Assembly: GCA_002269645.1 (NCBI GenBank)
Contig: NIVC01000486.1
Location: 186,001 to 250,000, forward strand
Origin: Macrostomum lignano
Taxonomy: Eukaryota
Reading direction: 5' to 3'
Length of the DNA stretch: 64,000 nucleotides
Positions 9,257 to 64,000 of the stretch are shown here, piece by piece; position 1 is the first letter of the stretch, and each line of letters opens with the position of its first letter. The notes beneath the pieces are model-generated. The model was not told the DNA's origin, searched no databases, and was given only the letters and a program-made list of their open reading frames with translations. Position numbers and translations under genes: made by a program.

Positions 9257-31309
<22,053 letters not shown>

Positions 31310-42400: not shown

Positions 42401-45400
42401 TCACTGGGGAGGGCAGCACCGATGATCGGGGCATTGTTAGTTACGCTTGGACTCAGGTCGGAGATCCGATCCTGAGCGCGGATATGCAGGTGAGTTGCAG
42501 GTGATCTCCAGTTTGAGTCATTCGATCTCTAGTTTGAGTCATTCGATCTCTAGTTTGAGTCATTCGATCTCTAGTTTGAGTCATTCGATCTCCAGTTTGA
42601 GTCATTCGATCTCTAGTTTGAGTCATTCGATCTCTAGTTTGAGTCATTCGATCTCTAGTTTGAGTCATTCGATCTCCAGTTTGAGTCATTCGATCTCTAG
42701 TTTGAGTCATTCGATCTCAATTTTGAGTCATTCGATGTGCCGTATGCAGAAAGCCTAGTCCAGACTAGCTCAGTAGTTGTGTAGTTCAGTCTATAGTCTA
42801 TGGTCTAGCTAACCTAGTTCTGTCTATAGTAGACCGGTCCAACTTTGTGTTTCTGCATACCAAATCCAAGTCCAGACTGGCTTTTCAAGACCGGACTACC
42901 CTAGACAGAGCTTTCTGCATACGGCCCGATCTCTAGTTTGAGTCATTCGATCTCTAGTTTGAGTCATTCGATCTCTAGTTTGAGTCATTCGATCTCTAGT
43001 TTGAGTAATTCGATCTCAGGTTTGAGTCATTCGATCTCAAGTTGGAGTCATTCGATCTCTAGTTTGAGTCATTCGATCTCCATTTTGAGTCATTCGATCT
43101 CAGGTTTGGGTCATTCGATCTCAATTTTGAGTCATTCGATCTCAATTTTGAGTCATTCGATCTCAGGTTTGAGTCATTCGATCTCAGGTTTTGAGTCATT
43201 CGATCTCAGGTTTGAGTCATTCGATCTCAGGTTTGAGTCATTCGATCTCAGGTTTGAGTCATTCGATCTCAATTTTGATTCATTTGATATCAATTTTGAG
43301 TAATTCGATCTCAAGTTTCAATCATTCGATCTCAGGTTTGAGTCATTCGATCAAGTCATCAGTTAATTGCATTATCTTTATCAATCATCAGTTACAGTCA
43401 ATCCATCAATCATCTGCTGATCCCGCCCGCTCAATACGGCAGGGCGCCCACTCGAAGCTGCTAAGGCTGTCCGGCCTGGTGGAGGGCGAGTACAAGTTCC
43501 AGCTGACAGTGACTGACGCGGCCGGCCAGTCGGACAGCGCCAACGTCACCGTGCTGGTTAAACGGCGCGGACTCAACCGGCCGCCGGTGATTCGCGCCGT
43601 GCCGGACAAGCTGAAAGTCCGACTGCCGCAATCGTCTGTCAGCATCAGCGCCGAAGCGTCTGACGATACCGGAGTCATTGCTGGCTGGCTGTGGGAGCAG
43701 CTGGACGACGGCAACAAGCGCCTGCGGCTGTTGAATGCCACGTCTCAGACTGTTAATGTCACTGGTAGGCGACGCTTATTAAGTCTGACACAGTTCACAA
43801 TAAGTCTGACACAGTTCTCAATAAGTCTGACACAGTTCACAATAAGTCTGACACAGTTCTCAATAAGTCTGACACAGTTCACAATAAGTCTGACACAGTT
43901 TTCAATAAGTCTGACACAGTTCTCAATAAGTCTGACACAGTTCTCAATAAGTCTGACACAGTTCTCAATAAGTCTGACACAGTTCACAATAAGTCTGACA
44001 CAGTTCTCAATAAGTCTGAGTCGTCTGACACAGTTCACAATAAGTCTGACACAGTTCACAATAAGTCTGACACAGTTCTCAATAAGTCTGACACAGTTCA
44101 CAATAAGTCTGACACAGTTCTCAATAAGTCTGACACAGTTCACAATAAGTCTGACACAGTTCTCTGAACAGTTCTCAATAAGTCTGACACAGTTCACAAT
44201 AAGTCTGACACAGTTCACAATAAGTCTGACACAGTTCTCAATAAGTCTGAGTCGTCTGACACAGTTCACAATAAGTCTGACACAGTTCACAATAAGTCTG
44301 ACACAGTTTTCAATAAGTCTGACACAGTTCTCAATAAGTCTGACACAGTTCTCAATAAGTCTGACACAGTTCTCAATAAGTCTGACACAGTTCACAATAA
44401 GTCTGACACAGTTCACAATAAGTCTGACACAGTTCTCAATAAGTCTGAGTCGTCTGACACAGTTCACAATAAGTCTGACACAGTTCATAATAAGTCTGAG
44501 ACAGTTCTCAATAAGTCTGACACAGTTCACAATAAGTCTGACACAGTTCTCAATAAGTCTGACACAGTTCTCAATAAGTCTGACACAGTTCTCAATAAGT
44601 CTGACACAGTTCTCAATAAGTCTGACACAGTTCTCTGACGCAGTTCTCAATAAGTCTGACACAGTTCTCAATAAGTCTGACACAGTTCTCAATAAGTCTG
44701 ACACAGTTCTCAATAAGTCTGACACAGTTCTCAATAAGTCTGACACAGTTCACAACAAGTCTGACGCAGTTCTCAATAAGTCTGATAAAGTTCTCTTTAA
44801 GTCCGACATAGATCTTTATAAGACTGGCACAGATCTCTATAAGTCTCAAAAGCCTGAGTAGGCAATTATCAACTCGGACACAGTTTTCCTCACGGCTGAT
44901 TCTCCTCATCAAGCCTGACTCTCCTCATCAAGCCTGACTCTCCTCACCAAGCTGGACTCTCCTCATCAAGCCTGACTCTCCTCATCAAGCCTGACTCCTC
45001 ATCGAGCCTGACTCTCCTCATCAAGCCTGACTCTCCTCATCAAGCCTGACTCTCCTCATCAAGCCTGACTCTCCTCATCAAGCCTGACTCTCCTCATCAA
45101 GCCTGACTCTCCTCATCAAGCCTGACTCTCCTCATCAAGCCTGACTCTCCTCATCAAGCCTGACTCTCCTCATCAAGCCTGACTCCTCATCGAGCCTGAC
45201 TCTCCTCATCAAGCCTGACTCTCATCTGACTCTCCTCATCAAGGCTGACTCTCCTCATCAAGCCTGACACTCCTCATCAAGCCTGACACTCCTCATCGAG
45301 CCTGACTCTCCTCATCAAGCCTGACTCTCCTCATCAAGCCTGACTCTCCTCATCAAGCCTGAATCCAATAATTTTACGATCGTCGCCGTCTGCTCACTTC

Positions 45401-48400
45401 CCAGGCCTCGCCGTTGGCAAAAACTTTCGCCTACGCGTCACGGCCGTCGATCAGGACGGGGCCAACTCCAGCGCGATCGCCTCGTTGACGGTGCTGCCCG
45501 GGCCGAACCAGCCGCCAAAAGCCGTCATTGCCGCGGTGCCCGCTCGGCTGCAACTCGACGGCACTGGCGGAGAGCTTCTGGCTATTGACGGTTCGGCCAG
45601 CTGGGACGATAAGGTATGGCTGCTGTGGCCACTAGGTATTCCCTACACAGCTTCGAAACTATCTGCCCCGAGAACCTGCCCTGAAGGGTCGCTGAGAACC
45701 TGCCCTGAATAGTCACTGACAACCTGTCCTGAAGGGTCACTGACAACCTGTTCTGAAGGGTTGCTGACAACCTGCCCTGAATGGTCACTGAGAACCTGTC
45801 CTGAAGGGTCACTGACAACCTGCCCTGAAGGGTCACTGACAACCTGCCCTGAAGGGTTGCTGACAACCTGCCCTGAATGGTCACTGAGAACCTGCCCTGA
45901 AGAGTCACTGACAACCTGCCCTGAAGGGTCACTGACAACCTGCCCTGAAGGGTCACTGACAACCTGCCCTGAAGGGTCGCTGACAACCTGTCCTGAAGAT
46001 TCACTGACAACCTGCTCTGAAGGGTTGCTGACAACCTGCCCTGAAGGGTCACTGACAACCTGTCACTGACATCCGAAAATTCTCAGAGAATCCCAAATTT
46101 CTACCTGAACCCTCACTAAAATATTTATTGAACCTTAATTCAGAATCATTCTGAGTAGCTGCAGAGAATTATTTTTGAGCAGCCACTGAGAACCTCCCCC
46201 CTCCTACCTTTGAGCAGCTGGTGACTGGCTACCGCTGGACCCGACTATCAAACTCATCAGCTGCCGGCTTCGCTTTGAACGGCTCGGCCAGCCAGCCCGT
46301 GCTGCTGCTCGCCAACCTCCTGCCCGGCCGTTACGCCTTCCGTTTGACCGTTCGCGATGCCGAAAACGCCAGCGGCTTCGCCGACGTCGCTTTCAAAGCC
46401 GTCGCCTGGCCATCGGCCGACGCTGTCGTTGTGCTGGAGCTGCGCGCCGAGCCCGCCAGCTTTCAACAGCAGGCAGCTGTGGCGGTGCTCAATCAGCTCA
46501 GGCTGGTGGCGCCGAGGCTGAAGCCGCTTGGCGATTGGACTGCGCCAGGCTCTGGCGGAGACGGCCTCGTCCGATTGCGTCTGGTGGCCGACAATGGCAG
46601 CGAAGGAGCTTTCCTGCCTGCTAGACAGGTGAGAACCTCTTAATCCTGCCTGATTGGGTGCTGCATCGTCTCCGTTCCTGTTCTAGGTTCCAATTCTCGA
46701 CAAGCCATAATCCCATTTCACAAGGCAGATATTCAGATTTTCCGGAATCAAGAATCGCTCCTTAAAAGCCTGTAGAATCGCCCATTAGTAGACTGTAGAA
46801 TTGCCCCTTAATAGCCTGTAGAATCGCCCCTTAATAGACTGTAGAATCGCCCCTTAATAGACTGTAGAATCGCCCCTTAATAGCCTGTAGAATCGCTCCT
46901 TAAAAGCCTGTAGAATCGCCCCTTAAAAGCCTGTAGAATTGCCCCTTAATAGACTGTAGAATCGCCCCTTAATAGCCTGTAGAATCGCCCCTTAATAGCC
47001 TGTAGAATTGCTCCTTAAAAGCCTGTAGAATCGCCCCTAATAGCCTGTAGAATTGCCCCTTAATAGACTGTAGAATCGCCCCTTAATAGCCTGTAGAATC
47101 GCCCCTTAATAGCCTGTAGAATCGCTCCTTAAAAGCCTGTAGAATCGCCCCTTAATAGCCTGTAGAATTGCCCCTTAATAGACTGTAGAATCGCCCCTTA
47201 ATAGCCTGTAGAATCGCCCCTTAATAGCCTGTAGAATCGCTCCTTAAAAGCCTGTAGAATCGCCCCTAATAGCCTGTAGAATCGCCCCTTAATAGCCTGT
47301 AGAATTGCCCCTTAATAGCCTGTAGAATCGCCCCTTAATAGCCTGTAGAATCGCCCCTTAATAGCCTGTAGAATTGCTCCTTAAAAGCCTGTAGAATCGC
47401 CCCTAATAGCCTGTAGAATTGCCCCTTAATAGACTGTAGAATCGCCCCTTAATAGCCTGTAGAATTGCCCCTTAATAGCCTGTAGAATTGCCCCTTGATA
47501 GCCTGTAGAATCGCTCCTTGATAGCCTGTAGAATTGCCCTTAATAGACTGTAGAATCGCCCCTTAATAGCCTGTAGAATCGCCCCTTAATAGCCTGTAGA
47601 ATCGCCCCTTTATAGCCTGTAGAATCGCCCCTTAGTAGCCTGTAGAATTGCTCCTTAAAAGCCTGTAGAATCGCCCCTTAGTAGCCTGTAGAATTGCTCC
47701 TTAAAAGCCTGTAGAATCGCCCCTTAATAGCCTCGAGAATGGCCCCTCAGGACTTCTCAAAGCTGGATTAACCCATTCAAATCCGCAATCTCACCAACCC
47801 GAAATCCGGCCAGCTGGTCGCCAATCTCCGCCGCCGCCTGCTGCCGGACACCCTGGACTATCCCGTGGCCGACCTGCGCACCGAGACCTGCCAGCTGACC
47901 TGCTCCGGCCGAGGCGTCTGCGACCCGGCTAGCCGAACCTGCCGCTGCCACTGGCTGTGGATGGCCAACCCGACGGCTGGCGGGCCCAACTGCGACTGGT
48001 CGCTGGTGTACGTCTGCCTGGCCTTGGCGGTGGCCCTGCTGTTGTGCCTGCCGCCGTCTCGCTGTCTCCTGGCCTCCTGCCGGCGTCGTTGGCGTCGCCG
48101 CGGCAGTCGTCAACAGCAGCGTCGGCGGCGTCGCCAACTTCTACGTCGACAGCGTCGTCGTCAACGAAGACGCGGCGACGGCAACGGCGGCGACAACGAC
48201 GACAGTAGCGACTACTACGAGTCGGAGTCGGTCGACGACTGCGACTACGAGGACGGCGCAGTTCCGCTGGCGTCGATGCCGAACGACGAATTGCGCGCCA
48301 TCGTCACCAGGCGAAGCGCCGCCGCATCGGCTCCGCCGTCGCCGCCTCCACCGTCGAAGCCTTCAGCGCAGTCGGTCGCGACCAACGCTCAGTCGCCGCC

Positions 48401-48434
48401 GCCACCGCCGACTCCTGCGGCTAAGGAAAAGTGA
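39435..48434 (+). CDS. KIAA0319L: KIAA0319/KIAA0319L (AAVR)-like type-I membrane protein, about 878 aa: signal peptide, Cys-rich module, S/T/N-rich stalk, four PKD domains, C6/EGF-like region, TM helix, Arg-rich tail. Exons 39435-39831, 40706-40837, 41945-42489, 43443-43764, 45405-45613, 46218-46628, 47814-48434.
   Basis: Phase-consistent GT-AG chain, 2637 nt in total. PKD motifs: PPRASAGSGIVIYLPNNRVNLTGEGSTDDRGIVSYAWTQ and LSGLVEGEYKFQLTVTDAAGQSDSANVTVLV. Juxtamembrane CQLTCSGRGVCDPASRTCRCHWLWMAN...NCDWSLVYV matches the KIAA0319-family pattern (from memory). Orthology to KIAA0319 versus KIAA0319L cannot be resolved. Confidence 0.85.
39897..40230. repeat. About 21-22-bp minisatellite (CCTGTTTTTGGCGCCCCCAAC)
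   Basis: Direct tandem copies in intron 1 of the KIAA0319-like gene. Confidence 0.9.
40913..41129 (+). mobile_element. SINE family A, copy 5 (3' truncated), intronic
   Basis: Same A/B boxes and core; the match ends at ...CAGCCGTACGC. Confidence 0.8.
41481..41849. mobile_element. Foldback/MITE-like element with inverted arms of about 60 bp
   Basis: 41481-41543 and 41790-41849 are reverse complements at about 90 percent by eye. A weaker outer IR lies at 41256-41284/41874-41899. Confidence 0.6.
42500..43352. repeat. 21-bp minisatellite (TCTAGTTTGAGTCATTCGATC), interrupted by a MITE
   Basis: Arrays at 42500-42736 and 42928-43352. Confidence 0.93.
42737..42927. mobile_element. 191-bp MITE (PIF/Harbinger-like termini) inserted in a minisatellite
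   Basis: 18-bp TIRs GTGCCGTATGCAGAAAGC / GCTTTCTGCATACGGCCC (1 mismatch) with a 3-bp duplication GAT on both sides; it splits the 21-bp array. Confidence 0.8.
43778..44790. repeat. 21-bp minisatellite (AATAAGTCTGACACAGTTCTC)
   Basis: Starts 14 nt after the exon 4 donor. Confidence 0.95.
44893..45362. repeat. 19-bp minisatellite (ATCAAGCCTGACTCTCCTC)
   Basis: Direct tandem copies in the same intron as the previous array. Confidence 0.95.
45668..46068. repeat. 24-bp minisatellite (GACAACCTGCCCTGAAGGGTCACT)
   Basis: Direct tandem copies. Confidence 0.93.
46764..47733. repeat. 23-bp minisatellite (GCCTGTAGAATCGCCCCTTAATA)
   Basis: Direct tandem copies. Confidence 0.95.
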
Positions 48435-50315: not shown

Positions 50316-52835
50316 TGTTCTATGTTCTACACGCTGAGTCACAAATTTTCTCTGATGGTTCTGAGTTAAAAGTCTAAACTCAACTGCTCGGTGTATTAAA
50401 TAAAATACTCTCCCCATGTACGATTTTGGCCATAGACAATCGTCAAAGCATGCGTTGAATATGGTTGGCCGTGTCATTAATTGAATGCTCCACTACTTAA
50501 ATTAAATGAAAACTGCTATAATAGTTATAGAAAACTCGTGAGCTCGATGTCTAAGTACATTGCACTTTGCTGAACCGATCTAGTCATTGTATTTGTTATA
50601 ATTGCTCCCACTATCGCGTCCTTTTCTATAAATTTCTTCTTTGTCAGACAATTCTCTCTGTACCATTGCTGTGATCTTCCTAGCCTAATGCTGCTAACCT
50701 TGCTATTCCTATCACAGATATTTGATAACGATATTAGATAAACTACTATCCTATATTTTTCTGAGGTCTGCTTGCCTTCTAACTTCTGACGTTTTTAATC
50801 AGTAATCTGAATGTTCAATGCATTATTTATAAATGCTGTTGATTTGCTCTGACTATACTTACTTCAAAAAACTTTAGCTTCCAGTAATAAAGTTTCAGTG
50901 CTAGCGTGAACTGGCTTTCCTTAACTTAAGTGTCCCCATGCATTTTCTTAATTGTTAGCTTCGCGTGTCGGGGCTTATTTCTGGGGCCAAAAAATATATG
51001 ATTTCAAAGCTGTGACGCATTCCACTTTCAAGTTTATCAGCTTCATAAGTGCATCAACTCAGATGACACAACAATTCTATTTACTGCTTTTTAAGCTGGT
51101 CTTTGGTCTAATTGCATTTTTTGCTTTTACATATGTACAAATCCTCGTGCTTGTGCCACTACCATTTATACAGAATTTGATTTGGTACAAACATCATTTT
51201 TTGATAATTGGCAAAGTAGCGGTTTTTAACAAAGGTGGGATGCAATTTTCCGCTCTATACATTTATTGAAAGGTGTAAGATGTTATCTATTTCACATAGA
51301 TCACGAATGAACAGAATTATTGAGTACCGTTAATGGTACATTACGCATGTATTACACTATAGCCATGGCTGCGATTTTGTGCTTGATCTGTATATTAAAC
51401 TTTTATGAATTGGGTCGGGTTTTGCGTATGCTGATACGCTGATTTTTCGTCTTGGCGTCGAAGACATACATAGGAAGATTTCTTTATTTAAATTCTTAGA
51501 CGATTGCTTCGATCGTCATCCCGTGGTGGCAACGATCTTATCTACAGAAAATGTACCAATTCGGTAAGATCTTATCGGGATGAAAGCGTGTCATCTATCG
51601 GTTAGAGATGTCAACAATTACATAAGAAGCTCAGATTTCGTATGTTTGAAGCGAACTTTATGCCAGCTTACAGATTGATCATGATATCGAACGGCATTAG
51701 CAAACTTAGATTTTATAAGTATGTAGCTACAAAAAAATAAATAACCCATCTAAATTTTTATTTTCCACGCTATAAAAAATGAGTAATAAAATGATGCTCT
51801 AATCTTTATTCAGGTTATTTTGTTAAGTTTGTAACTTAGCTTTCCTTGCGACGGCGCGGTACTTTAAATATCAACTTACTAGATATTTTTTTTTAGATTT
51901 GGAGTTTGGTATCAAGTTCTAACATTTTACATTGAATCATTGGAATACTATACTACTTAAATATTTTAGCTTTAAGACGCCAATTCAATTCTAAATAAGC
52001 AATTTTGGCTGCATTTTCACAAATATGTTGTCTTGTCAAATCAAATCAGTCTTACATTACATTACTTATGCCAGTTATGGTTATATTATATCCAAGTACA
52101 ACTGTACCACCAACACTAAATATCCTCACTTTAAAAAAACAGGCAGAGATGACGATGATTATTTTTAAAATATAATAAACCAGATCATGATCGCCATATC
52201 ATTACTTGTTAGCATAGGCTATCAGCTTAAAAGCAATCCTAATTGAAATATTTCAAAACTAAATTCCATTGGCATCAGTTATGTTTTCGCCATTTAGGTG
52301 CTTACTAGATAGATACCGACAAACCATTTTAGTATGGTGGATTTATTAACAATATTTTTTAATGAAAAGTCTTTAGTTAGATAATTATAATTTGCATTTT
52401 TATGAATTTAGCATTTAGCTTGTTTTTTTAATTAATACACTTAACATAGTTAATAATAAAAAAAATGATATGGGCAAAATTATTTATATTTGCTTATTAG
52501 TAAACACTGCAATGTCTAGGCCTACTCATATGTTCATATAGCTGAATGAGCTACTTGTCATTGATATATGATTAGTATATGATAATTTTCTTGATTGACT
52601 GCTATAGCATTTCTTGCTAGCTTCTCTAGCTTACCTAGCTTAAATATAAATAAATGAAAATAAACAACAAATATATAAAACAAAAATATAAAAACAATAA
52701 TCTTCATTTATGAAATATTTATTTACTGGATAAATATTTATGTGTAGCCTATCTTAATCATCAATTGTAATATGACGAATTTTATAAAATTACTTTTAAT
52801 GCTAATAAATTCACTTTCAACATTACAATTTTCAG

Positions 52836-54562
52836 GCAATTCGACTTACCATTGTCATCTTGCTCATTATTTTCCAATGTGGCATTCATGCATTTATTTA
52901 TTCATCATACTGTGAGTAAACTGACTGAGTTATATTGCAAAATTTTCTTTAAAAATAGTAAATAACCTCATATAGGAATTTATATCTAATGACAACCATT
53001 TTCTAATTCAGCCATTACCTTGCTGCCTGGCAAGTATCTGCGTGTGGGTGCCAATCTGACAGTTCAATGTGTTACTATCAGTGCACCTGCAGTGACCGAA
53101 GCTGCACTGAGAGATCAGCTGAGAGTGCGATGGTCCTCTAAAAATAGATTGATTTATTATAACTGCAGGTAAGCACATTGCTGTCAGGAGCATCCTGCAA
53201 TCTATTTAAAGTTATGTAATTGAGCTTGATGGAGTGTTGAACTCATGCAACTTTGGTGCTCGACTTTGATGGCCTGACATTCTCACCTATTTAGAGACCC
53301 CAGCACCTAGTCAGTGACCCTGACACCTATTTAGTGACCCTGACACCTATTTAGTGACCCTGACACCTAGTTAGTGACCCTGACACCTATTTAGTGACCC
53401 TGACACCTAGTTAGTGACCCTGACACCTATTTAGTGACCCTGACACCTATTTAGTGACCCTGACACCTATTTAGTGACCCTGACACCTATTTAGTGACCC
53501 TGACACCTATTTAGTGACCCTGACACCTATTTAGTGACCCTGACACCTATTTAGTGACCCTGACACCTATTTAGTGACCCTGACACCTATTTAGTGACCC
53601 TGACACCTATTTAGTGACCCTGACACCTATTTAGTGACCCTGACACCTAGTTAGTGACCCTGACACCTATTTAGTGACCCTGACACCTATCTAGTGACCC
53701 TGACACCTATTTAGTGACCCTGACACCTATTTAGTGACCCTGACACCTATTTAGTGACCCTGACACCTATTTAGTGACCCTGACACCTATCTAGTGACAC
53801 TGACACCTATTTAGTGACCCTGACACCTATTTAGTGACCCTGACACAGTGAATAAAGTGCCCAAACATCTATTTAAGCCCCATAAACTTGCCTGTGAAAT
53901 GACACCTATTTAGACACCTTTGCAATCTATTTCACATTCATTATGACACATTAATTGCTCCATACGTTGTTGCTAAGTGATGCAAATACATTGTAAGAGA
54001 AAATTAGTATGAGCAATCCTCAGTTTTAAAACAATGCCTATTACTTCTTAACCACACATATCTATAATTACCTGCTCTGTGAAGAGCTATCTCCGTGCTC
54101 TTTTATCATTGCGTAACCTTCTTGCACCTTGCAGGGCCGTCAACGAGACGGCTTTCGAATGGACTTTGACCAGCGTGGCCATAAACGATTCGGGCATTTT
54201 CCAGTGCGTGAACATCAGCCATGACAGTCACACGGAGTCCGCACACGCTGAGCTCTTCGTGGGCGGTGAGGATCTGTGCTGCAGCTTGGGATAATTTCTA
54301 ACAAATGCATTCGATAAATTGATGGGGAACCTGGAGGCTGACCGCGAGGCCACACTAACTTGAGGCTCGTGCACGAAAATTGACCTGGGCCTGCGCAATT
54401 CGCACTCACAATGTTTACAGTGCAGTGTCACGTGTCTGATGGGACCCTGCGTGTGCGCATCTGTGTGGGTGCTCGGGGATCAGCGGATATAGACAGACAG
54501 GCAGACAGACAGACAGACAGACAGACAGGCAGACACACAGACAGACAGGCAGACAGGCAGGC

Positions 54563-54619
<57 letters not shown>

Positions 54620-54638
54620 GGCAGACAGACAGACAGGC

Positions 54639-54675
<37 letters not shown>

Positions 54676-54810
54676 GGCAGACAGACAGGCAGACAGACAG
54701 TCAGGCAGACAGACAGACAGACAGGCGGACAGACAGACAGACAGACAGACAGACACACAGGCAGACAGACAGACAGACAGACAGCCAGGCAGACAGACAG
54801 ACAGACAGGC

Positions 54811-54866
<56 letters not shown>

Positions 54867-55018
54867 GGACAGACAGACAGACAGGCAGACAGACAGGCAG
54901 ACAGACAGTCAGGCAGACAGACAGACAGACAGGCGGACAGACAGACAGACAGACAGACAGACACACAGGCAGACAGACAGACAGACAGACAGCCAGGCAG
55001 ACAGACAGACAGACAGAC

Positions 55019-55059
<41 letters not shown>

Positions 55060-55114
55060 GGCAGACAGACAGACAGACAGGCAGACAGACAGACAGACAG
55101 ACAGACAGACAGGC

Positions 55115-55159
<45 letters not shown>

Positions 55160-55230
55160 GGCAGACAGACACTAAGACAGACAGACAGGCAGACATGCAG
55201 ACACGCAGACAGACAGACAGACAGACAGGC

Positions 55231-55263
<33 letters not shown>

Positions 55264-55278
55264 TGCAGACAAACAGAC

Positions 55279-55315
<37 letters not shown>

Positions 55316-55390
55316 GGCAGACAGACACTAAGACAGACAGACAGGCAGACATGCAGACACGCAGACAGACAGACAGACAGACAGCCAGGC

Positions 55391-55425
<35 letters not shown>

Positions 55426-55438
55426 TAGACAGACAGAC

Positions 55439-55531
<93 letters not shown>

Positions 55532-55534
55532 GGC

Positions 55535-55583
<49 letters not shown>

Positions 55584-58500
55584 GGCAGACAGACACTAAG
55601 ACAGACAGACAGGCAGACAGGCAGACACGCAGACAGACAGACAGACAGGCAGACACGCAGACAGACAGGCAGACACGCAGACAGACAGACAGACAGGCAG
55701 ACACGCAGACAGACAGGCAGACACGCAGACAGACAGACAGACAGGCAGACACGCAGAGAGACAGACGCGCAGCCACTCCCGCCACTCCAGAGCCACCGAA
55801 GCTGACAGGCCTGGACTGCGAGTGGCCAAACCGGGAATCTGAGAATTTCCGCTGCCTTTCAAGGCCGAATCTGAGGTCCGTTTGGGAGGCTACGAATATC
55901 GTGAAGACAGCGGGCAAGGTCCACCTGGTGCTGGAGTTCGCTGACAAGAGAGACCCTTTCATGCAGTCAGAGTTGAACCAATGCAGAAAGAGGACGGATC
56001 ATTATAATAATTTAATTTGTTTTCCTTCTGACTCGGACAGCTCGACCGGTTTCGAGTACCGCCGGTGCCTGAGGAATGGCGCACCTGCAGCGCTTTCGGT
56101 GCCCTCGGCGCCGGGTTGCCAATGCAACTCCGAGGGCCGCTGCCGCTGGCTCCGGGTGGCCGAGGCCAGCGGCCCGCTGCGGCTGCGAGCCCGCGGCTGC
56201 AACCGGCTGGGCTGGTGCGGCGGCTGGGTCTCAGTGGAGGGCGACCGGCGGCAGTTTGGTGAGGAGTTGGTGGAAGAGGTTGGGAGAAGAGGGCGGAACT
56301 GACTTGAGGGAGGGGGCGGAACTGATTTGAGGGAGAGGGCGGAACTGATTGAGGGAGAGGGCGGAACTGATTGAGGGAGAGGGCGGAACTGATTGAGGGA
56401 GAGGGCGGAACTGATTTAGGGAGAGAGCGGAACTGATTGAGGGAGAGGGCGGAACTGATTTAGGGAGAGAGCGGAACTGATTGAGGGAGAGGGCGGAACT
56501 GATTTAGGGAGAGGGCGGAACTGATTGAGGGAGAGGGCGGAACTGATTTGAGAGAGAGGGTCCGCACTGATTGAGGGAGGGGGCGGAACTGATTTGAGGG
56601 AGAGTTCGGAACTGATTTGAGGGAGAGAGCGGAACTGATTTAGGGAGAGGGCGGAACTGATTTAGGGAGAGAGCCGAACTGATTGAGGGAGAGGGCGGAA
56701 CTGAATAAGGGAGAGGGCGGAACTGAATAAGGGAGAGGGCGGAACTGATTTGATTGAGAGGGCGGAACTTATTTGATTGAGAGGGCGGAACTGATTTGAG
56801 GGAGAGGGCGGAACTGATTTAAGGAGAGGGCGGAACTGATTGAGGGAGGGGGCGGAACTGATTTAGGGAAAGGGCGGAACTGATTGAGGGAGAGGGCGGA
56901 ACTGATTGAGGGAGAGGGCGGAACTGAATTGAGGGAGAGGGCGGAACTGAGAGGGCCAAGGGCGGAACTGAATTGAGGGAGAGGGCGGAACTGAGAGGGC
57001 CGAGGGCGGAACTGAATTGAGGGAGAGGGCGGAACTGAGAGGGCCGAGGGCGGAACTGAATTGAGGGAGAGGGCGGAACTGAGAGGGCCGAGGGCGGAAC
57101 CGACAGAGGGAGAGAACGGAAACCGTTCGAGGAGGTTGGGAGAGTTTAACAACCCCTTCTCACGCAGCTTCTCCTCATCTCCCCCTCCCTCCTCTCCAGA
57201 GCGGCCCGGCCTAGTCCGCAGTCTTCGCCTATTCGCCTTAAACGGCTCAGTGGTCGCCAAATTCTCGCCGCCAACCCAGCCGGACCCGGCCAGCAAGCGA
57301 GACTACGAGTGCCGCCTGCGACTCCGGCCGTGGCTGGACGGCGCCCGCATCGGCCCAGTCGCGTCCGAGACAGTGGAAAACTCCACAGTTCGCCTGTCGG
57401 CTCGGGCGCGTGGCCGCGAGACTTACACGGCCGAGGTGAGCTGCCGGCCCAAGTACTTCAGACTGCCCGGCAACAGCGGCTGGTCGGAGCCAGCTGAGGC
57501 GAAGATTTCCACGCCAGTGTGGCCGCCCTGCCCGCCCCGGCTGGCCCTGCTGTTGGAGCGGCGCAATTTTGTCTGGCTGTCGGCGCCGCCTGCGGAATGC
57601 AGGCATGGCCCCATTGTGAGCTATCGGCTGCGGCTGGGCGGGGGCGGAGCCGGCAGAAACTCAAGCGCGGCCGCTTTGGTGGCTGAACTGCCGCTGCATC
57701 CTGCGGAGCCCGGTGGCGGCTGGATTCGATTGGACCAGGCCGACATCCGGGGTCTGTGGGGCCGAGGTGCCTTTTTAGTAGGGTGGCTCAGACTCCCTGG
57801 TCCTTTGCACCCTGTCGCCCTTTTCTTACTGTCGCCCTTTTCTTACTGTCGCCCTTTTCTTACTGTCGCCCTTTTTTTACTGTCGCCCTTTTCCCACTGT
57901 CGCCCTTTTCCCACTGTCGCCCTTTTCCCACTGTCGCCCTTTTCCCACTGTCGCCCTTTTCCCACTGTCGCCCTCTTCCCACTGTCCCCCTTTTTGCCAC
58001 TGTCGCCCTTTTCTTACTGTCGCCCTTTTCTTACTGTCGCCCTTTTCTTACTGTCGCCCTTTTCCCACTGTCGCCCTTTTCCCACTGTCGCCCTTTTCTT
58101 ACTGTCGCCCTTTTCCCACTATCGCCCTTTTCCCACTGTCGCCCTTTTCACTGTGTCGCCCTTCTCACTCTGTCGCCCTTCTCACTGTGTCACCCTTTTC
58201 TTACTGTCGCCCTTTTCACTCTGTCGCCCTTCTCACTGTGTCGCTCTTATCACTGTGTCGCCCTTATCACTCTGTCGCCCTTCTCACTGTGTCGCCCTTC
58301 TCACTGTGTCGCCCTTTTCACTCTGTCGCCCTTTTCACTCTGTCGCCCTTTTCACTCTGTCGCCATTTTCCCACTGTCGCCTTTTCACTCTGTCGCCCTT
58401 TTCACTCTGTCGCCCTTTCCCACTGTCGCCCTTTTCCCACTGTCGCCCTTTTCCCACTGTAGCCCTTTTCCCACTGTCCCCCTTTTTGCCACTGTCGCCC

Positions 58501-61500
58501 TTTTCTTACTGTCGCCCTTTTCCCACTGTCGCCCTTTTCCCACTGTCGCCCTTTTCACTCTGTCGCCCTTTTCACTCTGTCGCCCTTTTCCCACTGTCGC
58601 CTTTTCACTCTGTCGCCCTTTTCACTCTGTCGCCCTTTCCCACTGTCGCCCTTTTCCCACTGTCGCCCTTTTCCCACTGTCGCCCTTTTCCCACTGTCCC
58701 CCTTTTTGCCACTGTCGCCCTTTTCTTACTGTCGCCCTTTTCCCACTGTCGCCCTTTTCCCACTATCGCCCTTTTCCCACTGCCGCCCTTTTCCCACTGT
58801 CGCCCTTTTCACTGTGTCGCCCTTCTCACTCTGTCGCCCTTCTCACTGTGTCGCCCTTTTCTTACTGTCGCCCTTTTCACTCTGTCGCCTTTTTCACTCT
58901 GTCGCCCTTTTCACTGTGTCGCCCTTATCACTGTGTCGCCCTTATCACTGTGTCGCCCTTTTCTTACTGTCGCCCTTCTCACTGTGTCGCCCTTTTCTTA
59001 CTGTCGCCCTTTTCACTCTGTCGCCTTTGTCGCCCTTTTCCCACTGCCTTTGCACTCTGTCGCCCTTCTCACTCTGTCGCCCTTCTTACTGTGTCGCCCT
59101 TTTCTTACTGTCGCCCTTTTCACTCTGTCGCCCTTCTCACTGTGTCGCCCTTATCACTGTGTCGCCCTTATCACTGTGTCGCCCTTATCACTGTGTCGCC
59201 CTTTTCACTCTGTCGCCCTTTTCCCACTGTCGCCCTTTTCACTCTGTCGCCCTTTTTACTCTGTCGCCCTTTTCAATCTGTCGCCCTTTTCACTCTGTCG
59301 CCCTCTTCACTCTGTCGCCCTTTTCACTCTGTCGCCCTTTTCACTCTGTCGCCCTTCTCACTCTGTCGCCCTTCTTACTGTGTCGCCCTTTTCTTACTGT
59401 CGCCCTTTTCACTCTGTCGCTCTTATCACTGTGTCGCTCTTATCACTGTGTCGCCCTTATCACTGTGTCGCTCTTCTCACTGTGTCGCCCTTCTCACTGT
59501 GTCGCCCTTTTCACTCCGTCGCCCTTTTCACTCTGTCGCCCTTTTTACTCTGTCGCCCTTTTCACTCTGTCGCCCTTTTCACTCTGTCGCCCTTTTCCCA
59601 CTGCCGCCCTTTTCCCACTGTCGCCCTTTTCCCACTGTCGCCTTTTTCCCACTGTCCCCCTTTTTGCCACTGTCGCCCTTTTCTTACTGTCGCCCTTTTC
59701 TTACTGTCGCCCTTTTCTTACTGTCGCCCTTTTCCCACTGTCGCCCTTTTCCCACTATCGCCCTTTTCCCACTGCCGCCCTTTTCCCACTGGCGCCCTTT
59801 TCACTGTGTCGCCCTTTTCTTACTGTCGCCCTTTTCACTCTGTCGCCTTTTTCACTCTGTCGCCCTTTTCACTCTGTCGCCCTTTTGCACTGTCGCCCTT
59901 AAACCTTAAACCCAACAGTAAAAATAAAACTTGTAACCCTCGACTGTTTCTCGGCAATCGGCGTATATTGTGTTGTTGCTTGCAAGTTTTCCTCACGTGC
60001 TCATACATGTACTTTATACGCAATATTTATTATTATTTAATTTAACGATTTGCACTCTGTCCGTCAACTCAGGCCAGTCCACAAACTTGATGGCTTCGGC
60101 GACAACTTCAGCTGGCGAAGGTCGGACAATGCCGGTTCTGCTGGCCGAGTGGCTGTCCGAGTGTCCGGACGGCTGGGCGGCCGGTCAGTTGGAGCTGCAG
60201 ATGCTGTGGCTGCGGAACACGGAGAACGACAGTGTCCGGGACGCCACCGCGGCTCTGGCTCGGTGGCGACTACCTGCAGCCGTCACGGTGGAACCGCCAT
60301 TGGCGATCGCCACCTGCGAGCCTGCGGCTAAGTGAGCTCCAGCTATGATCCTCAGTCTGAGTCTGTATCCTCTCAGATCCTCAGTCTGAGTCTGTATCCT
60401 CTTAGATCCTCAGTCTGAGTCTGTATCCTCTTAGATCCTCAGTCTGAGTCTGTATCCTCTCAGATCCTCAGTCTAAGTCTGTATCATCTTAGATCCTCAG
60501 TTTGAGTCTGTATCCTCCCAGATCCTCAGTCTGAGTCTGTATCCTCTCAGATCCTCATTTTTAGTCTGTATCCTCCCAGATCCCCAGTCTAAGTCTGTAT
60601 CCTCCCAGATCCTCAGTTTGAGTCTGTATCCTCCCAGATCCTCAGTCTGAGTCTGTATCCTCTCAGATCCTCATTTTTAGTCTGTATCCTCCCAGATCCC
60701 CAGTCTAAGTCTGTATCCTCCCAGATCCTCAGTCTGAGTCTGTATCCTCCCAGATCCCCAGTCTGAGTCTGTATCCTCTCAGATCCTCAGTCTGAGTCTG
60801 TATCCTCCCAGATCCCCAGTTTAAGTCTGTATCCTCCCAGATCCTCAGTCTGAGTCTGTATCCTCCCAGATCCTCAGTCTGAGTCTGTATCCTCCCAGAT
60901 CCTCAGTCTGAGTCTGTATCCTCTCAGATCCTCAGTCTGAGTCTGTATCCTCCCAGATCCTCAGTCTGAGTCTGTATCCTCTCAGATCCTCAGTTTGAGT
61001 CTGTATCCTCCCAGATCCCCAGTCTAAGTCTGTATCCTCCCAGATCCTCAGTCTGAGTCTGTATCCTCCCAGATCCCCAGTCTAAGTCTGTATCCTCCCA
61101 GATCCTCAGTCTAAGTCTGTATCCTCCCAGATCCCCAGTCTAAGTCTGTATCCTCCCAGATCCTCAGTCTAAGTCTGTATCCTCTCAGATCCTCAGTCTG
61201 AGTCTGTATCCTCCCAGATCCTCAGTCTGAGTCTGTATCCTCCCATATCCTCAGTCTGAGTCTGTATCCTCCCAGATCCTCAGTCTGAGTGCCACTCCAA
61301 TCCGCAGCGCCACTTCAGCAGCCGAGCCAGCGCCACCCCTGTCCACCTGCCGTCTCCTGTCGCTTTCGCCCCCGTCGACAAACGAGTCTTGGACGCAACT
61401 GAGCTGGCGCCAAACAACAGGCGCTATTCTGGCGCCAGCCGGTTCCGATGGCGCCGGCAGCCGGTGCGTGTGCCGCCAGCGGGCCGAGCCACTTCCTGAC

Positions 61501-62541
61501 GACGCGCTGTCCGGCCGGCTGGTGCTGCCGAAGGTCCAGCTGCTCCGGCTGAACGACAATGGCGGCGACGGCGGTAGCGGCCTGGTTGTTGAATTCGACG
61601 CAGCGCCGAGGCAGTGCGGGCTGCGCGGCCTGTTCGCTGTCGGCTTCGAGGTCGCCGACGCCGCTGGGCCGCTGGCCAACTGCAGCCGGCAGCGGCAGCC
61701 GCCGACCTCCGCCAGGTTCCGCTGTCCGCTGCCGGCGTCCCTGTCGCATCGGCCGCCACTTCAGCTGCTTGCCCGCCTGTAGTAAGTGATAAAGCGTAAT
61801 TTAGCGTTGAAATGCTACTATTTCTACTATAAGTAGTGAACTGAAGGGGTGAAAAATTTATCCAACAAATTATTTGAAAGCCAGTGACAAAGTTGGCCAA
61901 TAAATGGTTATATTTAGTGTTATAAAGGGCTGAGGGGGGTCGCCCGCCACACACACCCTCAATTCTTCATAACTTCAGTTCAAAGAGAATTAGTTAAGAG
62001 TCTTGAAACATTATACTGTTACATTTCTACCTGTTCCTCACTGTTTGCCAGCGGCAACGAGTACCGCGTGCTGCAGCTGAACACTACCATAGTGCAGCCG
62101 ACATCCAATCGGATTGCTGCAGCTGTCATCGTTGCCGCGGTTGTCGCCGTGCTGGCCGCTGTCGCAGCTGTGGCGCTGCGGTGCTACCATCGCCAGCGCA
62201 GGCAGCGCTGGGTGCCCCGCGCGGCTTCAGATAGATATCCCAGCCTGATGGGGCTGGACCAGCAGCTGCAGCACCTACGGCCGAACGGCGAGGAAGAAGC
62301 GGCTACGGCTACGACGCCTCTTAGCGCCGGCACCGACAGTCGGCATGTCGACGGGACCGGCAACGGCGACGCTTGTCAGTTTGGTGAGTGGCGTCTGAAC
62401 TATTTGGATTCTATTTGCGCTTGTGCTACTGTTAGTAGCTTAACTGAGCATGCAATGCGATGGGCGCCGATTTCAGAGATCAACGAGGACTACAACTATG
62501 CACAGGGCAGCAACGGCTACTCGCCACGGTCTGAGTGCTAA
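52836..62541 (+). CDS. gp130/Domeless-like class I cytokine-receptor-type protein (signal peptide, Ig, CHR D2/D3, FN3-like domains, TM, about 89-aa tail); start codon exon not resolved. Exons 52836-52911, 53012-53168, 54135-54265, 55791-56258, 57200-57766, 60073-60331, 61308-61781, 62052-62383, 62477-62541.
   Basis: Phase-consistent chain (1,2,1,1,1,2,2,1), 2529 nt. Signal-like AIRLTIVILLIIFQCGIHA. Ig: VGANLTVQC...LRVRW...DSGIFQC. D2: GEPPKLTGLDCEWPNRESENFRC...LRARGCNRLG. D3: YTAEVSCRPKYFRLPGNSGWSEP (degenerate WSxWS). FN3: VWLSAPPAECRHGPIVSYRLRL...ASATTSAGEG. TM: IAAAVIVAAVVAVLAAVAAVAL. No kinase or phosphatase domain before the stop. Confidence 0.75.
53300..53846. repeat. 20-bp minisatellite (GTGACCCTGACACCTATTTA)
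   Basis: Homogeneous array in an intron of the receptor gene. Confidence 0.95.
54490..55765. repeat. Degenerate (ACAG)n microsatellite
   Basis: Tetranucleotide repeat with GCAG/ACAC variants, ending about 25 nt before the acceptor at 55790. Confidence 0.97.
56290..57105. repeat. About 22-bp purine-rich minisatellite (GAGGGAGAGGGCGGAACTGATT)
   Basis: Direct tandem copies. Confidence 0.93.
57808..59897. repeat. 17-18-bp pyrimidine-rich minisatellite (ACTGTCGCCCTTTTCCC)
   Basis: About 2.1 kb of variant tandem units. Confidence 0.95.
60347..61289. repeat. 29-bp minisatellite (GATCCTCAGTCTGAGTCTGTATCCTCCCA)
   Basis: Fills almost the entire intron 60332-61307. Confidence 0.95.
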
Positions 62542-62593
62542 TTGTCACTAAATATGATTCTGATATGATCAATTTGTGTTCTATTTAAACTGG

Positions 62594-64000
62594 CGAGCTA
62601 GTAGAGAGCTAGTGGAAAGCTAGTGGAGAGCTGGTGGAGAGCTAATGGAAAGCTAGTGGAGAGCTAGTGGAGAGCTAGTGGAAAGCTAGTGGAGAGCTAG
62701 TGGAGAGCTAGTGGAGAGCTAGTGGAGAGCTGGTGGAGAGCTAGTGGAGAGCTAGTGGAGAGCTAATGGAGAGCTAATGGAGAGCTAGTGGAGAGCTAGT
62801 GGAGAGCTGGTGGAGAGCTAATGGAGAGCTAGTGGAGAGCTAATGGAGAGCTAGTGGAGAGCTGGTGGAGAGCTAATGGAGAGCTAGTAGAGAGCTAATG
62901 GAGAGCTAGTGGAGAGCTAGTGGAGAGCTAGTGGAGAGCTAGTAGAGAGCTAATGGAGAGCTGGTGGAGAGCTAGTGGAGAGCTGGTGGAGAGCTAGTGC
63001 AGAGCTAGTAGAGAGCTAGTGGAGAGCTAGTGGAGAGCTAGTGGAGAGCTAGTGGAGAGCTAGTGGAGAGCTAGTAGAGAGCTAATGGAGAGCTGGTGGA
63101 GAGCTAGTGGAGAGCTAATGGAGAGCTAATGGAGAGCTAGTAGAGAGCTAGTGGAGAGCTAGTGGAGAGCTAGTGGAGAGCTAGTGGAGAGCTAATGGAG
63201 AGCTAGTAGAGAGCTAATGGAGAGCTAGTGGAGAGCTAGTAGAGAGCTAGTGGAGAGCTAGTGGAGAGCTAGTGGAGAGCTAGTGGAGAGCTAGTGCAGA
63301 GCTAGTAGAGAGCTAGTGGAGAGCTAGTAGAGAGCTAGTGGAGAGCTAGTAGAGAGCTAGTGGAGAGCTAGTGGAGAGCTAGTGGAGAGCTAATGGAGAG
63401 CTAGTAGAGAGCTAATGGAGAGCTAGTGGAGAGCTAGTAGAGAGCTAGTGGAGAGCTAATGGAGAGCTAGTAGAGAGCTAGTAGAGAGCTAGTGGAGAGC
63501 TAGTGGAGAGCTAGTGGAGAGCTAGTGGAGAGCTAGTGGAGAGCTAATGGAGAGCTAGTAGAGAGCTAGTAGAGAGCTAGTGGAGAGCTAGTGGAGAGCT
63601 AGTAGAGAGCTAGTGGAGAGCTAATGGAGAGCTAGTAGAGAGCTAGTAGAGAGCTAGTGGAGAGCTAGTAGAGAGCTAGTGGAGAGCTAGTAGAGAGCTA
63701 GTGGAGAGCTAGTGGAGAGCTAGTGGAGAGCTAGTGGAGAGCTAGTGGAGAGCTAGTGGAGAGCTAGTGGAGAGCTAGTGGAGAGCTAGTGGAGAGCTAG
63801 TGGAGAGCTAGTAGAGAGCTAGTGGAGAGCTAGTGGAGAGCTAGTAGAGAGCTAGTGGAGAGCTAGTGGAGAGCTAGTGGAGAGCTAGTGGAGAGCTAGT
63901 GGAGAGCTAGTGGAGAGCTAGTGGAGAGCTAGTGGAGAGCTAGTGGAGAGCTAGTGGAGAGCTAGTGGAGAGCTAGTGGAGAGCTAGTGGAGAGCTAGTG
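62594..64000. repeat. 11-bp minisatellite (GCTAGTGGAGA), running off the window
   Basis: Direct tandem copies to the window end. Confidence 0.97.

Follow-up and report, generated by a model that had tools for sequence, protein, structure and literature searches.

A Macrostomum-restricted gene with minisatellite-filled introns encodes a predicted type I membrane glycoprotein that resembles gp130 and Domeless in its order of parts

We analysed a window of 64,000 nt from the flatworm Macrostomum lignano (assembly GCA_002269645.1, contig NIVC01000486.1, positions 186,001 to 250,000), in which AT-rich (~33% GC) and GC-rich stretches alternate and tandem arrays are numerous; positions below count from its first letter. 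The subject is a gene on the plus strand at 52836-62541, where stop-free, coding-looking blocks of high GC content (64%) are separated by minisatellites. A sequence-only reading of this DNA had proposed a hidden gp130/Domeless-type cytokine receptor gene here, with nine exons, minisatellite-filled introns and about 842 amino acids (aa), in a host that might be a basal flatworm, as M. lignano is. The single in-phase exon chain is real, and five of its introns do hold arrays. Our initial rebuild, with junctions chosen by eye and joined by script, gave nine AG...GT exons in phase with 851 codons plus a TAA stop. The fourth exon of the earlier reading holds a 93-nt intron, so the final model has ten exons and a predicted product of 807 aa, including a methionine donated by the spliced leader (SL). 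In the corrected model, acceptors at 55791 and 61308 replace the first in-phase AGs. Each junction in the window has an identical counterpart in a homeologous locus of the same assembly (L001). The intron boundaries are GT-AG except for one donor that is mutated in the window copy (intron 4); seven of the eight canonical GT donors follow the species consensus GT[G/A]AG, all nine cis acceptors end in CAG, and the open reading frame (ORF) is free of stops and frameshifts over 806 codons. The exons are as follows, with D2 to D6 denoting the modules that follow the immunoglobulin (Ig) domain, FN3 fibronectin type III and TM the transmembrane helix.

52836-52911, plus strand: exon 1, signal peptide (M)AIRLTIVILLIIFQCGIHA..., phase-1 donor GTGAGT
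53012-53168, plus strand: exon 2, N-terminal half of the Ig domain (LTVQC, VRW)
54135-54265, plus strand: exon 3, C-terminal half of the Ig domain (DSGIFQC)
55791-55947, plus strand: exon 4, first part of D2 (EPPKLTGLDCEW...VLEFAD); acceptor ctccag/AG, as in the homeolog and the UniProt models
56041-56258, plus strand: exon 5, second, Cys-rich part of D2 (...GCQCNSEGRC...LRLRARGCNRLGWC...)
57200-57751, plus strand: exon 6, D3 (FN3-like, with the NSGWSEP end at 57472-57492) and the first half of D4
60073-60331, plus strand: exon 7, second half of D4 and start of D5
61308-61781, plus strand: exon 8, beta-rich, Cys-containing modules D5/D6; acceptor ccgcag/CGC, as in the homeolog
62052-62383, plus strand: exon 9, stalk, TM helix (62113-62178) and proximal tail with WVP and YPSL
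62477-62541, plus strand: exon 10, end of the tail (EINEDYNYAQGSNGYSPRSEC) and TAA stop; the homeolog has the identical stop

In the prokaryote-style ORF list for the window, exons 4-6 lie buried among repeat-derived ORFs; a 994-aa repeat ORF covers exon 6, and a repeat frame covers the upstream part of exon 4. Exons swallowed in this way make the gene invisible to a bacterial-style ORF track. The earlier description of the gene as hidden therefore holds for that track but not for the published annotation, where the homeolog is GenBank PAA94799.1 (Mlig017067.g1), an 814-aa 'hypothetical protein BOX15_Mlig017067g1, partial'. By brute-force spliced reconstruction, ten GT-AG exons in L001 regenerate PAA94799.1 exactly. 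L001 aligns collinearly with the window, through introns as well as exons, at ~90% nucleotide identity. Its gene is the homeolog of the window gene or else a recent duplicate of it. The two copies share their exon junctions, neighbouring genes and intron minisatellite families. In the homeolog the intron 4 donor is GT and the repeat arrays are shorter; three small indels, all of them in frame, also separate the copies. The two proteins are 94.7% identical and the exon nucleotides 95.7%, compared with only 74% identity over the 300 nt upstream. With dS at 0.067 and dN at 0.025 (dN/dS 0.375), the comparison indicates purifying selection on a protein-coding gene, though one that is evolving fairly fast. 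A scan of the window for paralogs of the Ig/FN3-like gene found none elsewhere in it.

Beyond this pair, a search of 5.8 billion proteins with the spliced protein returned four matches, all of them M. lignano UniProt models named 'Ig-like', 'Fibronectin type-III' or 'P-type' domain-containing, which are fragmentary and change frame repeatedly. An HMMER profile search of 1.84 billion representatives likewise recovered M. lignano fragments only. As the matches in both protein sets come from M. lignano alone, the family is Macrostomum-restricted at the sequence level. The UniProt fragments A0A1I8FMC2, A0A1I8FG44, A0A1I8FND8 and A0A1I8IUV9 belong to the same gene family as the window gene, and A0A1I8FMC2 looks like a frame-shifted model of the window copy itself. 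Annotation in the records of this family goes no further than 'Ig-like' or 'FN3 domain-containing' (UniProt uses 'Ig-like domain-containing' and, for three to four fragment models, 'Fibronectin type-III domain-containing'). The names 'GPS domain-containing' and 'P-type domain-containing', attached to the frame-shifted fragments A0A1I8JLI6 and A0A1I8FD22, were discarded, having no Pfam support on the correct splice. The gene identifier Mlig017067 was not found in the literature searched. The gene is already in the published annotation, but without an assigned function.

Exon 1 lacks an ATG. Upstream, the frame is closed by two stops at a distance of 10-11 codons, and no ATG lies between them and the exon. 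Immediately before the exon stands a candidate signal for trans-splicing.

52830-52835, plus strand: TTTCAG, proposed SL trans-splice acceptor directly upstream of exon 1; in L001 the counterpart of 52830-52836 is at 9995-10001

In M. lignano the trans-acceptor motif is [T/C]TNCAG, and the 35-nt spliced leader ends in ATG (PMC8629364). TTTCAG fits this motif, and an SL ATG joined at exon 1 is in frame and yields MAIRLTIVILLIIFQCGIHA..., a typical signal peptide. The mRNA would be trans-spliced at 52835/52836, with translation beginning at the AUG that ends the leader. PAA94799.1 starts at the same base as exon 1 in the window, and it is the lack of an ATG of its own that explains why this model is flagged 'partial'.

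The predicted protein is organized as follows.

Residues 1-20: leader, hydrophobic N-terminus
Residues ~27-122: Ig domain (LTVQC, VRW, DSGIFQC)
Residues ~123-247: D2, with 8 Cys
Residues 248-353: D3, with NSGWSEP at its end
Residues ~354-461: D4
The following ~235 aa: D5 and D6, beta-rich and Cys-containing
Residues 697-718: TM helix, followed by the basic stop-transfer stretch RCYHRQRRQR
Last 89 aa, basic stretch included: cytoplasmic tail

The layout described in the sequence-only reading, from signal peptide through Ig domain, beta-rich modules and TM helix to a short non-catalytic tail, is present, and the peptide strings quoted there (EPPKLTGLDCEW, LRARGCNRLG, YTAEVSCRPKYFRLPGNSGWSEP and VWLSAPPAECRHGPIVSYRLRL) all occur in the translated chain. 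LTVQC, VRW and DSGIFQC supply the Ig signature (B-strand Cys, C-strand Trp and D-x-G-x-[YF]-x-C). The closest match of this domain is Ig D1 of PECAM-1 (E=0.001), and in Pfam it reaches Ig_3, Ig_2, V-set and I-set at E 0.02-0.1, all under the gathering scores. After the Ig domain, the ectodomain continues for ~570 aa as four or five beta-rich, Cys- and sequon-rich modules, among which D3 is FN3-like. Folding of single-exon translations by AlphaFold2 (AF2), in single-sequence mode without an alignment, gave seven strands for the D3 exon (pLDDT 52-68). All 13 N-glycosylation sequons and all 24 Cys are N-terminal of the TM helix. The tail holds no catalytic domain and differs between the copies by three substitutions and one 2-aa indel in 89 aa. 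A kinase or phosphatase exon further downstream, which the earlier reading had named as evidence that would count against it, was not found: the homeolog stops at the identical codon, and the next gene there is a separate SLC7-type cationic amino-acid transporter with its own ATG (L001 23014-26200, plus strand), ~6 kb downstream of the homeolog and past two minisatellites. The YPSL of the tail (62209-62247, residues 729-741) fits the YxxPhi endocytic and the YPxL ALIX-type motifs and is found in both copies.

We consider it rather probable that this is a Macrostomum-restricted gene, one of two homeologs, encoding an 807-aa type I membrane glycoprotein that serves as a non-catalytic receptor or adhesion molecule at the cell surface. 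Such a protein would bind an extracellular partner through its Ig-D2-D3 end and act inside the cell via its tail alone, either through cytosolic kinases or adaptors recruited to conserved tyrosines or through endocytic sorting driven by YPSL. Generic Ig superfamily and FN3 adhesion and receptor proteins, such as PECAM-1, integrin beta4 and LAR, differ from it: they have multiple Ig domains and/or a tail that is long or catalytic, and Pfam recognises them readily. Some observations weigh against this assignment. D2, D5 and D6 are without a validated fold, and the AF2 model of D2, which included the intron-derived insert, had a pLDDT of only 42.5. The intron 4 donor reads GA in the window copy, which may consequently make an altered or defective D2. 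Finally, several weak signals favour cytokine receptors specifically over a generic Ig/FN3 protein.

The proposal built on these signals is that the protein is a genuine but extremely divergent tall class I cytokine receptor of the gp130/Dome type, which we regard as unlikely. Ig, D2 and D3 would then form the cytokine-binding module and D4-D6 the FN3 legs; a ligand would bring receptors together as dimers and so switch on a kinase bound at the membrane-proximal W-x-P region. Class I receptors of the gp130/Dome type consist of a signal peptide, an Ig domain, a CHD, FN3 modules and a TM helix, without a catalytic domain, Dome and gp130 being archetypal (PMC1963337). The window protein is alike gp130 (IL6ST) and Drosophila Domeless in its order of parts, with one Ig domain, two modules at the CHR position, sandwich modules, a TM helix and a non-catalytic tail. 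In addition, NSGWS lies at the end of D3 (residues 339-343), in the WSXWS position, and invertebrate receptors typically carry an incomplete WSXWS (PMC10276838). Because S-x-WS-like ends also occur in ordinary FN3 domains, NSGWS is compatible with a cytokine receptor but not diagnostic of one.

The strongest pairwise signal came from D3. Its best single match was the membrane-proximal WSXWS domain of EPOR (EPOR D2), with which it aligns collinearly and end to end at 33% identity over 97 aa in BLASTP against the human protein; the E-value of 2e-4 applies to that single comparison, and since EPOR was taken from a PDB-wide ranking, it becomes ~40 at database scale. The alignment pairs GLV...L in strand A, VV..(W/F)-PP in strand B, YE in strand C, RGR-x-YT-x-V-x-x-R in strands E-F and (W/N)S-x-WSEP in strand G. 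Smith-Waterman scores, expressed as z against composition-preserving shuffles and computed with reference sequences checked against the PDB (EPOR, gp130, GHR, PRLR and IL-6Ra), were 8.3-8.7 for human EPOR D2 and 3.4-7.4 for eight EPOR orthologs with both Macrostomum copies. The 37 EPOR sequences retrieved, mostly mammalian, are too narrow a set for a broad class I profile. With non-mammalian EPORs the likeness is weaker (z 3.4-5), and D2 of the window protein does not share it; EPOR itself is a short receptor with a CHR only and a Box 1/2 tail. Against gp130 D3 (z 0.5), GHR D2, PRLR D2 and IL-6Ra D3, the window D3 remained at z<=1.4, whereas those family members match one another at z 5-20. 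D4 gave a weak match to gp130 D4 (z 4.1-4.4) in the same chain order, which is the likeness noted in the earlier reading, whose quoted gp130 strings were correct. D2 showed no Smith-Waterman signal against any CHR N-domain, and part of the D2 originally described is the intron-derived insert.

Small profile hidden Markov models (HMMs) gave a similar picture. With a model of five WSXWS domains, 1 and 0 of 1000 shuffles reached the D3 score of the two copies. When EPOR was removed from the model, 45 and 12 of 1000 did so, and with a generic FN3 model 81 and 23 of 1000 (48/1000 for D4), so that without EPOR D3 scores no better as a cytokine-receptor domain than as a generic FN3 domain. D2 scored best with the CHR N-domain model, a score reached by 35 of 1000 shuffles. 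An hhalign comparison of the two-copy D2-D3 alignment with a five-receptor CHR alignment covered 30 columns only, in strands F-G of D3 (P=0.05). At database scale, no match at E<=10 to Pfam fn3, IL6Ra-bind, EpoR_lig-bind or related families was obtained with the whole protein, its domains, the corrected D2 or the homeolog. PDB phmmer searches with D2-D3 or D3-D4 likewise returned nothing at E<=10, though the major receptors are all in the PDB, and no cytokine-receptor or FN3 match appeared among the 1.84 billion protein representatives. An I-set domain of a neighbouring gene scores E=2e-30 in Pfam, showing that the negative Pfam result is not due to M. lignano proteins being generally unrecognisable.

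In Foldseek searches of the PDB with the D3 model, all top matches were FN3/Ig-like sandwiches. Cytokine-receptor FN3 domains made up 30 of the top 50 chains, among them beta-common D4, EBI3 and EPOR (these three at 23-28% identity), G-CSFR, IL-7Ra, PRLR, gamma-c and IFNGR1. The remainder comprised integrin beta4 FN3, monobodies, LAR FN5 and bacterial sandwiches, and counted by distinct proteins the split was approximately even. None of these matches was at E<=0.001 (best 1.4e-3), and the model behind them is of low confidence. The low-confidence D2 model gave meaningless matches.

The first CHD domain is described by CX(9-10)CXWX(26-32)CX(10-15)C (PMC1963337, PMC10276838), and the strict pattern is absent from D2, which reads C-x11-C-L-S-x37-C-x16-C plus four more Cys, with spacings outside the motif and no CxW. 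The relaxed four-Cys pattern appears in 22% of D2 shuffles and carries no weight; as human gp130 itself misses the strict expression by one residue, the motif is a soft criterion and an unreliable discriminator. The intron phases of D2, 1-2-1, would match what we take to be a conserved CHD pattern. The tail, with 89 aa compared with ~277 in gp130, contains neither PxP nor PxxPxP as a Box 1, and a W-V-P lies 11 residues past the TM helix. It has no distal YxxQ, the sole YxxQ being YHRQ three residues from the membrane, and its distal tyrosines stand in YPSL, YNYA, YAQG and YSPR. As to pathway partners, the JAK family is missing from the tyrosine-kinase table of S. mansoni (PMC3135232). A survey published in 2026 detected no STAT in Platyhelminthes and makes contradictory statements about JAK (PMC13203501), and we found no literature linking Domeless-type receptors to planarians. 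A search with STAT3 as query, aimed at an M. lignano STAT, was saturated by vertebrate STAT3. In favour of the cytokine-receptor proposal are the layout, NSGWS, the D3-EPOR likeness and the Foldseek lean; against it are the lack of family-level homology, of the CHD Cys motif, of Box 1 and of a distal YxxQ. The gp130/Dome layout is real at cartoon level, and the likeness to class I cytokine receptors is suggestive but unproven.

A different question is whether the window copy still encodes the same protein as its homeolog, given the state of intron 4.

55948-56040, plus strand: 93-nt segment, an intron in the homeolog (L001 12116-12208); donor GAGAGA, in the homeolog GTGAGA

We regard it as improbable that the window copy is a decaying or neo-functionalising duplicate and that the normal protein is made by Mlig017067.g1 alone; on this view, loss of the donor would force the copy either to keep 31 extra residues in D2 or to splice from a cryptic donor. 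The copies differ at 4 of the 93 positions of the segment, the rest of which is 96% identical, and the window copy retains an intact acceptor, CTGAC branch-like site and pyrimidine tract. A single T-to-A change abolishes both the donor and the in-frame TGA within it, the only in-frame stop, so the segment can be read through as 31 aa, KRDPFMQSELNQCRKRTDHYNNLICFPSDSD. In the AF2 model of D2, a helix falls on this insert in an otherwise beta-rich module. The C-x11-C pair in the D2 of the earlier reading (NQC...LIC), which looked like the second CHD disulfide, sits in the same segment and was dropped. A base-calling error at the GA donor is conceivable, but the UniProt model of the window copy, which derives from an assembly with different indels, also reads through the 93 nt, indicating that the variant is probably real. 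Against decay speak the remaining ORF, intact over its 806 codons, and the dN/dS ratio, together with the loss of the stop along with the donor and the presence of cryptic in-frame GT sites at 55966 and 55972 (18 and 24 nt downstream of the lost donor). The GT-to-GA change, by which one homeolog gains an in-frame insert in place of an intron, is a tidy small case of post-duplication divergence.

That chance alone has lined up these open frames in DNA rich in GC and repeats, where local arrays do yield very long spurious ORFs on both strands, we reject as having practically no probability, since the donors and acceptors follow consensus, an independent GenBank model has identical junctions, exon conservation lies far above that of the upstream flank, indels are in frame only and dN/dS is below 1.

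Arrays in five introns total 5716 of the 9706 bp of the locus (59%); they are listed here with the array that follows the gene.

53284-53846, no strand assigned: intron 2 minisatellite, 20-mer x28
54491-55766, no strand assigned: intron 3 array, (AGAC)n-based, 1276 bp; 733 bp in the homeolog
56288-57121, no strand assigned: intron 5 minisatellite, 22-mer x37, 834 bp; 553 bp in the homeolog
57802-59900, no strand assigned: intron 6 minisatellite, 17-mer x123, 2099 bp; 1278 bp in the homeolog
60347-61290, no strand assigned: intron 7 minisatellite, 29-mer x33, 944 bp; 272 bp in the homeolog (29/27-mer)
62591-64000, no strand assigned: 11-mer minisatellite downstream of and outside the gene, up to the window end; the homeolog stop also precedes this array

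The shared minisatellite families occupy the same introns in both copies (53284-61290 in the window, 11201-15783 in L001) at unequal lengths, and no 20-mer array was detected in intron 2 of L001 at a score of >=200. The arrays are older than the duplication, and their copy number changes quickly.

Other genes of the window are also associated with arrays. The upstream neighbour at ~39435-48434 (plus strand) is a KIAA0319-like gene with K319L-like PKD domains (E 6e-12 and 2e-5) and a TM helix plus cytoplasmic tail at 47865-48434; its introns, too, are filled with minisatellites, and a K319L-like PKD gene likewise precedes the homeolog in L001. On the minus strand, a large gene at ~11739-31309 encodes canonical I-set Ig domains (E 2e-30 at 17829-18599, and also at 11739-13056) and has long helical, spectrin-like-looking exons at 28391-29617 that Pfam does not recognise. 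Arrays break up this gene as well, among them (AGAC)n at 28415-28991 and (TCTA)n at 20295-21817. A coiled-coil-like ORF at 2056-3119 (plus strand) matches the centrosome-localisation domain of Cep57/PPC89 below threshold (E 7e-6, 26.5 vs 27.1 bits) and adjoins a 47/327-bp array at 355-1948. The UniProt model A0A1I8FD22 wrongly fuses the SLC7 transporter to the receptor-like gene; the window ends before the transporter position.

M. lignano is a regeneration and stem-cell model, and JAK/STAT signalling in flatworms is not established by the literature consulted. What has been gained is a clean, corrected model of a lineage-restricted gene that encodes an uncharacterised surface receptor and is under purifying selection, together with the testable hypothesis that its D3, with NSGWS, is EPOR-like. 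The locus also illustrates how a start codon donated by the SL, together with introns full of minisatellites, conceals a gene from simple ORF scans. If the protein were a true gp130/Dome homolog, it would reopen the question of flatworm JAK/STAT and offer a handle on cytokine-like signalling in regeneration. Platyhelminthes would then have kept a cytokine-receptor system in an early-branching flatworm with a very fast-evolving receptor, and either JAK/STAT components would have been missed by surveys, or the receptor would have been rewired to other kinases via a tail without Box 1 or YxxQ.

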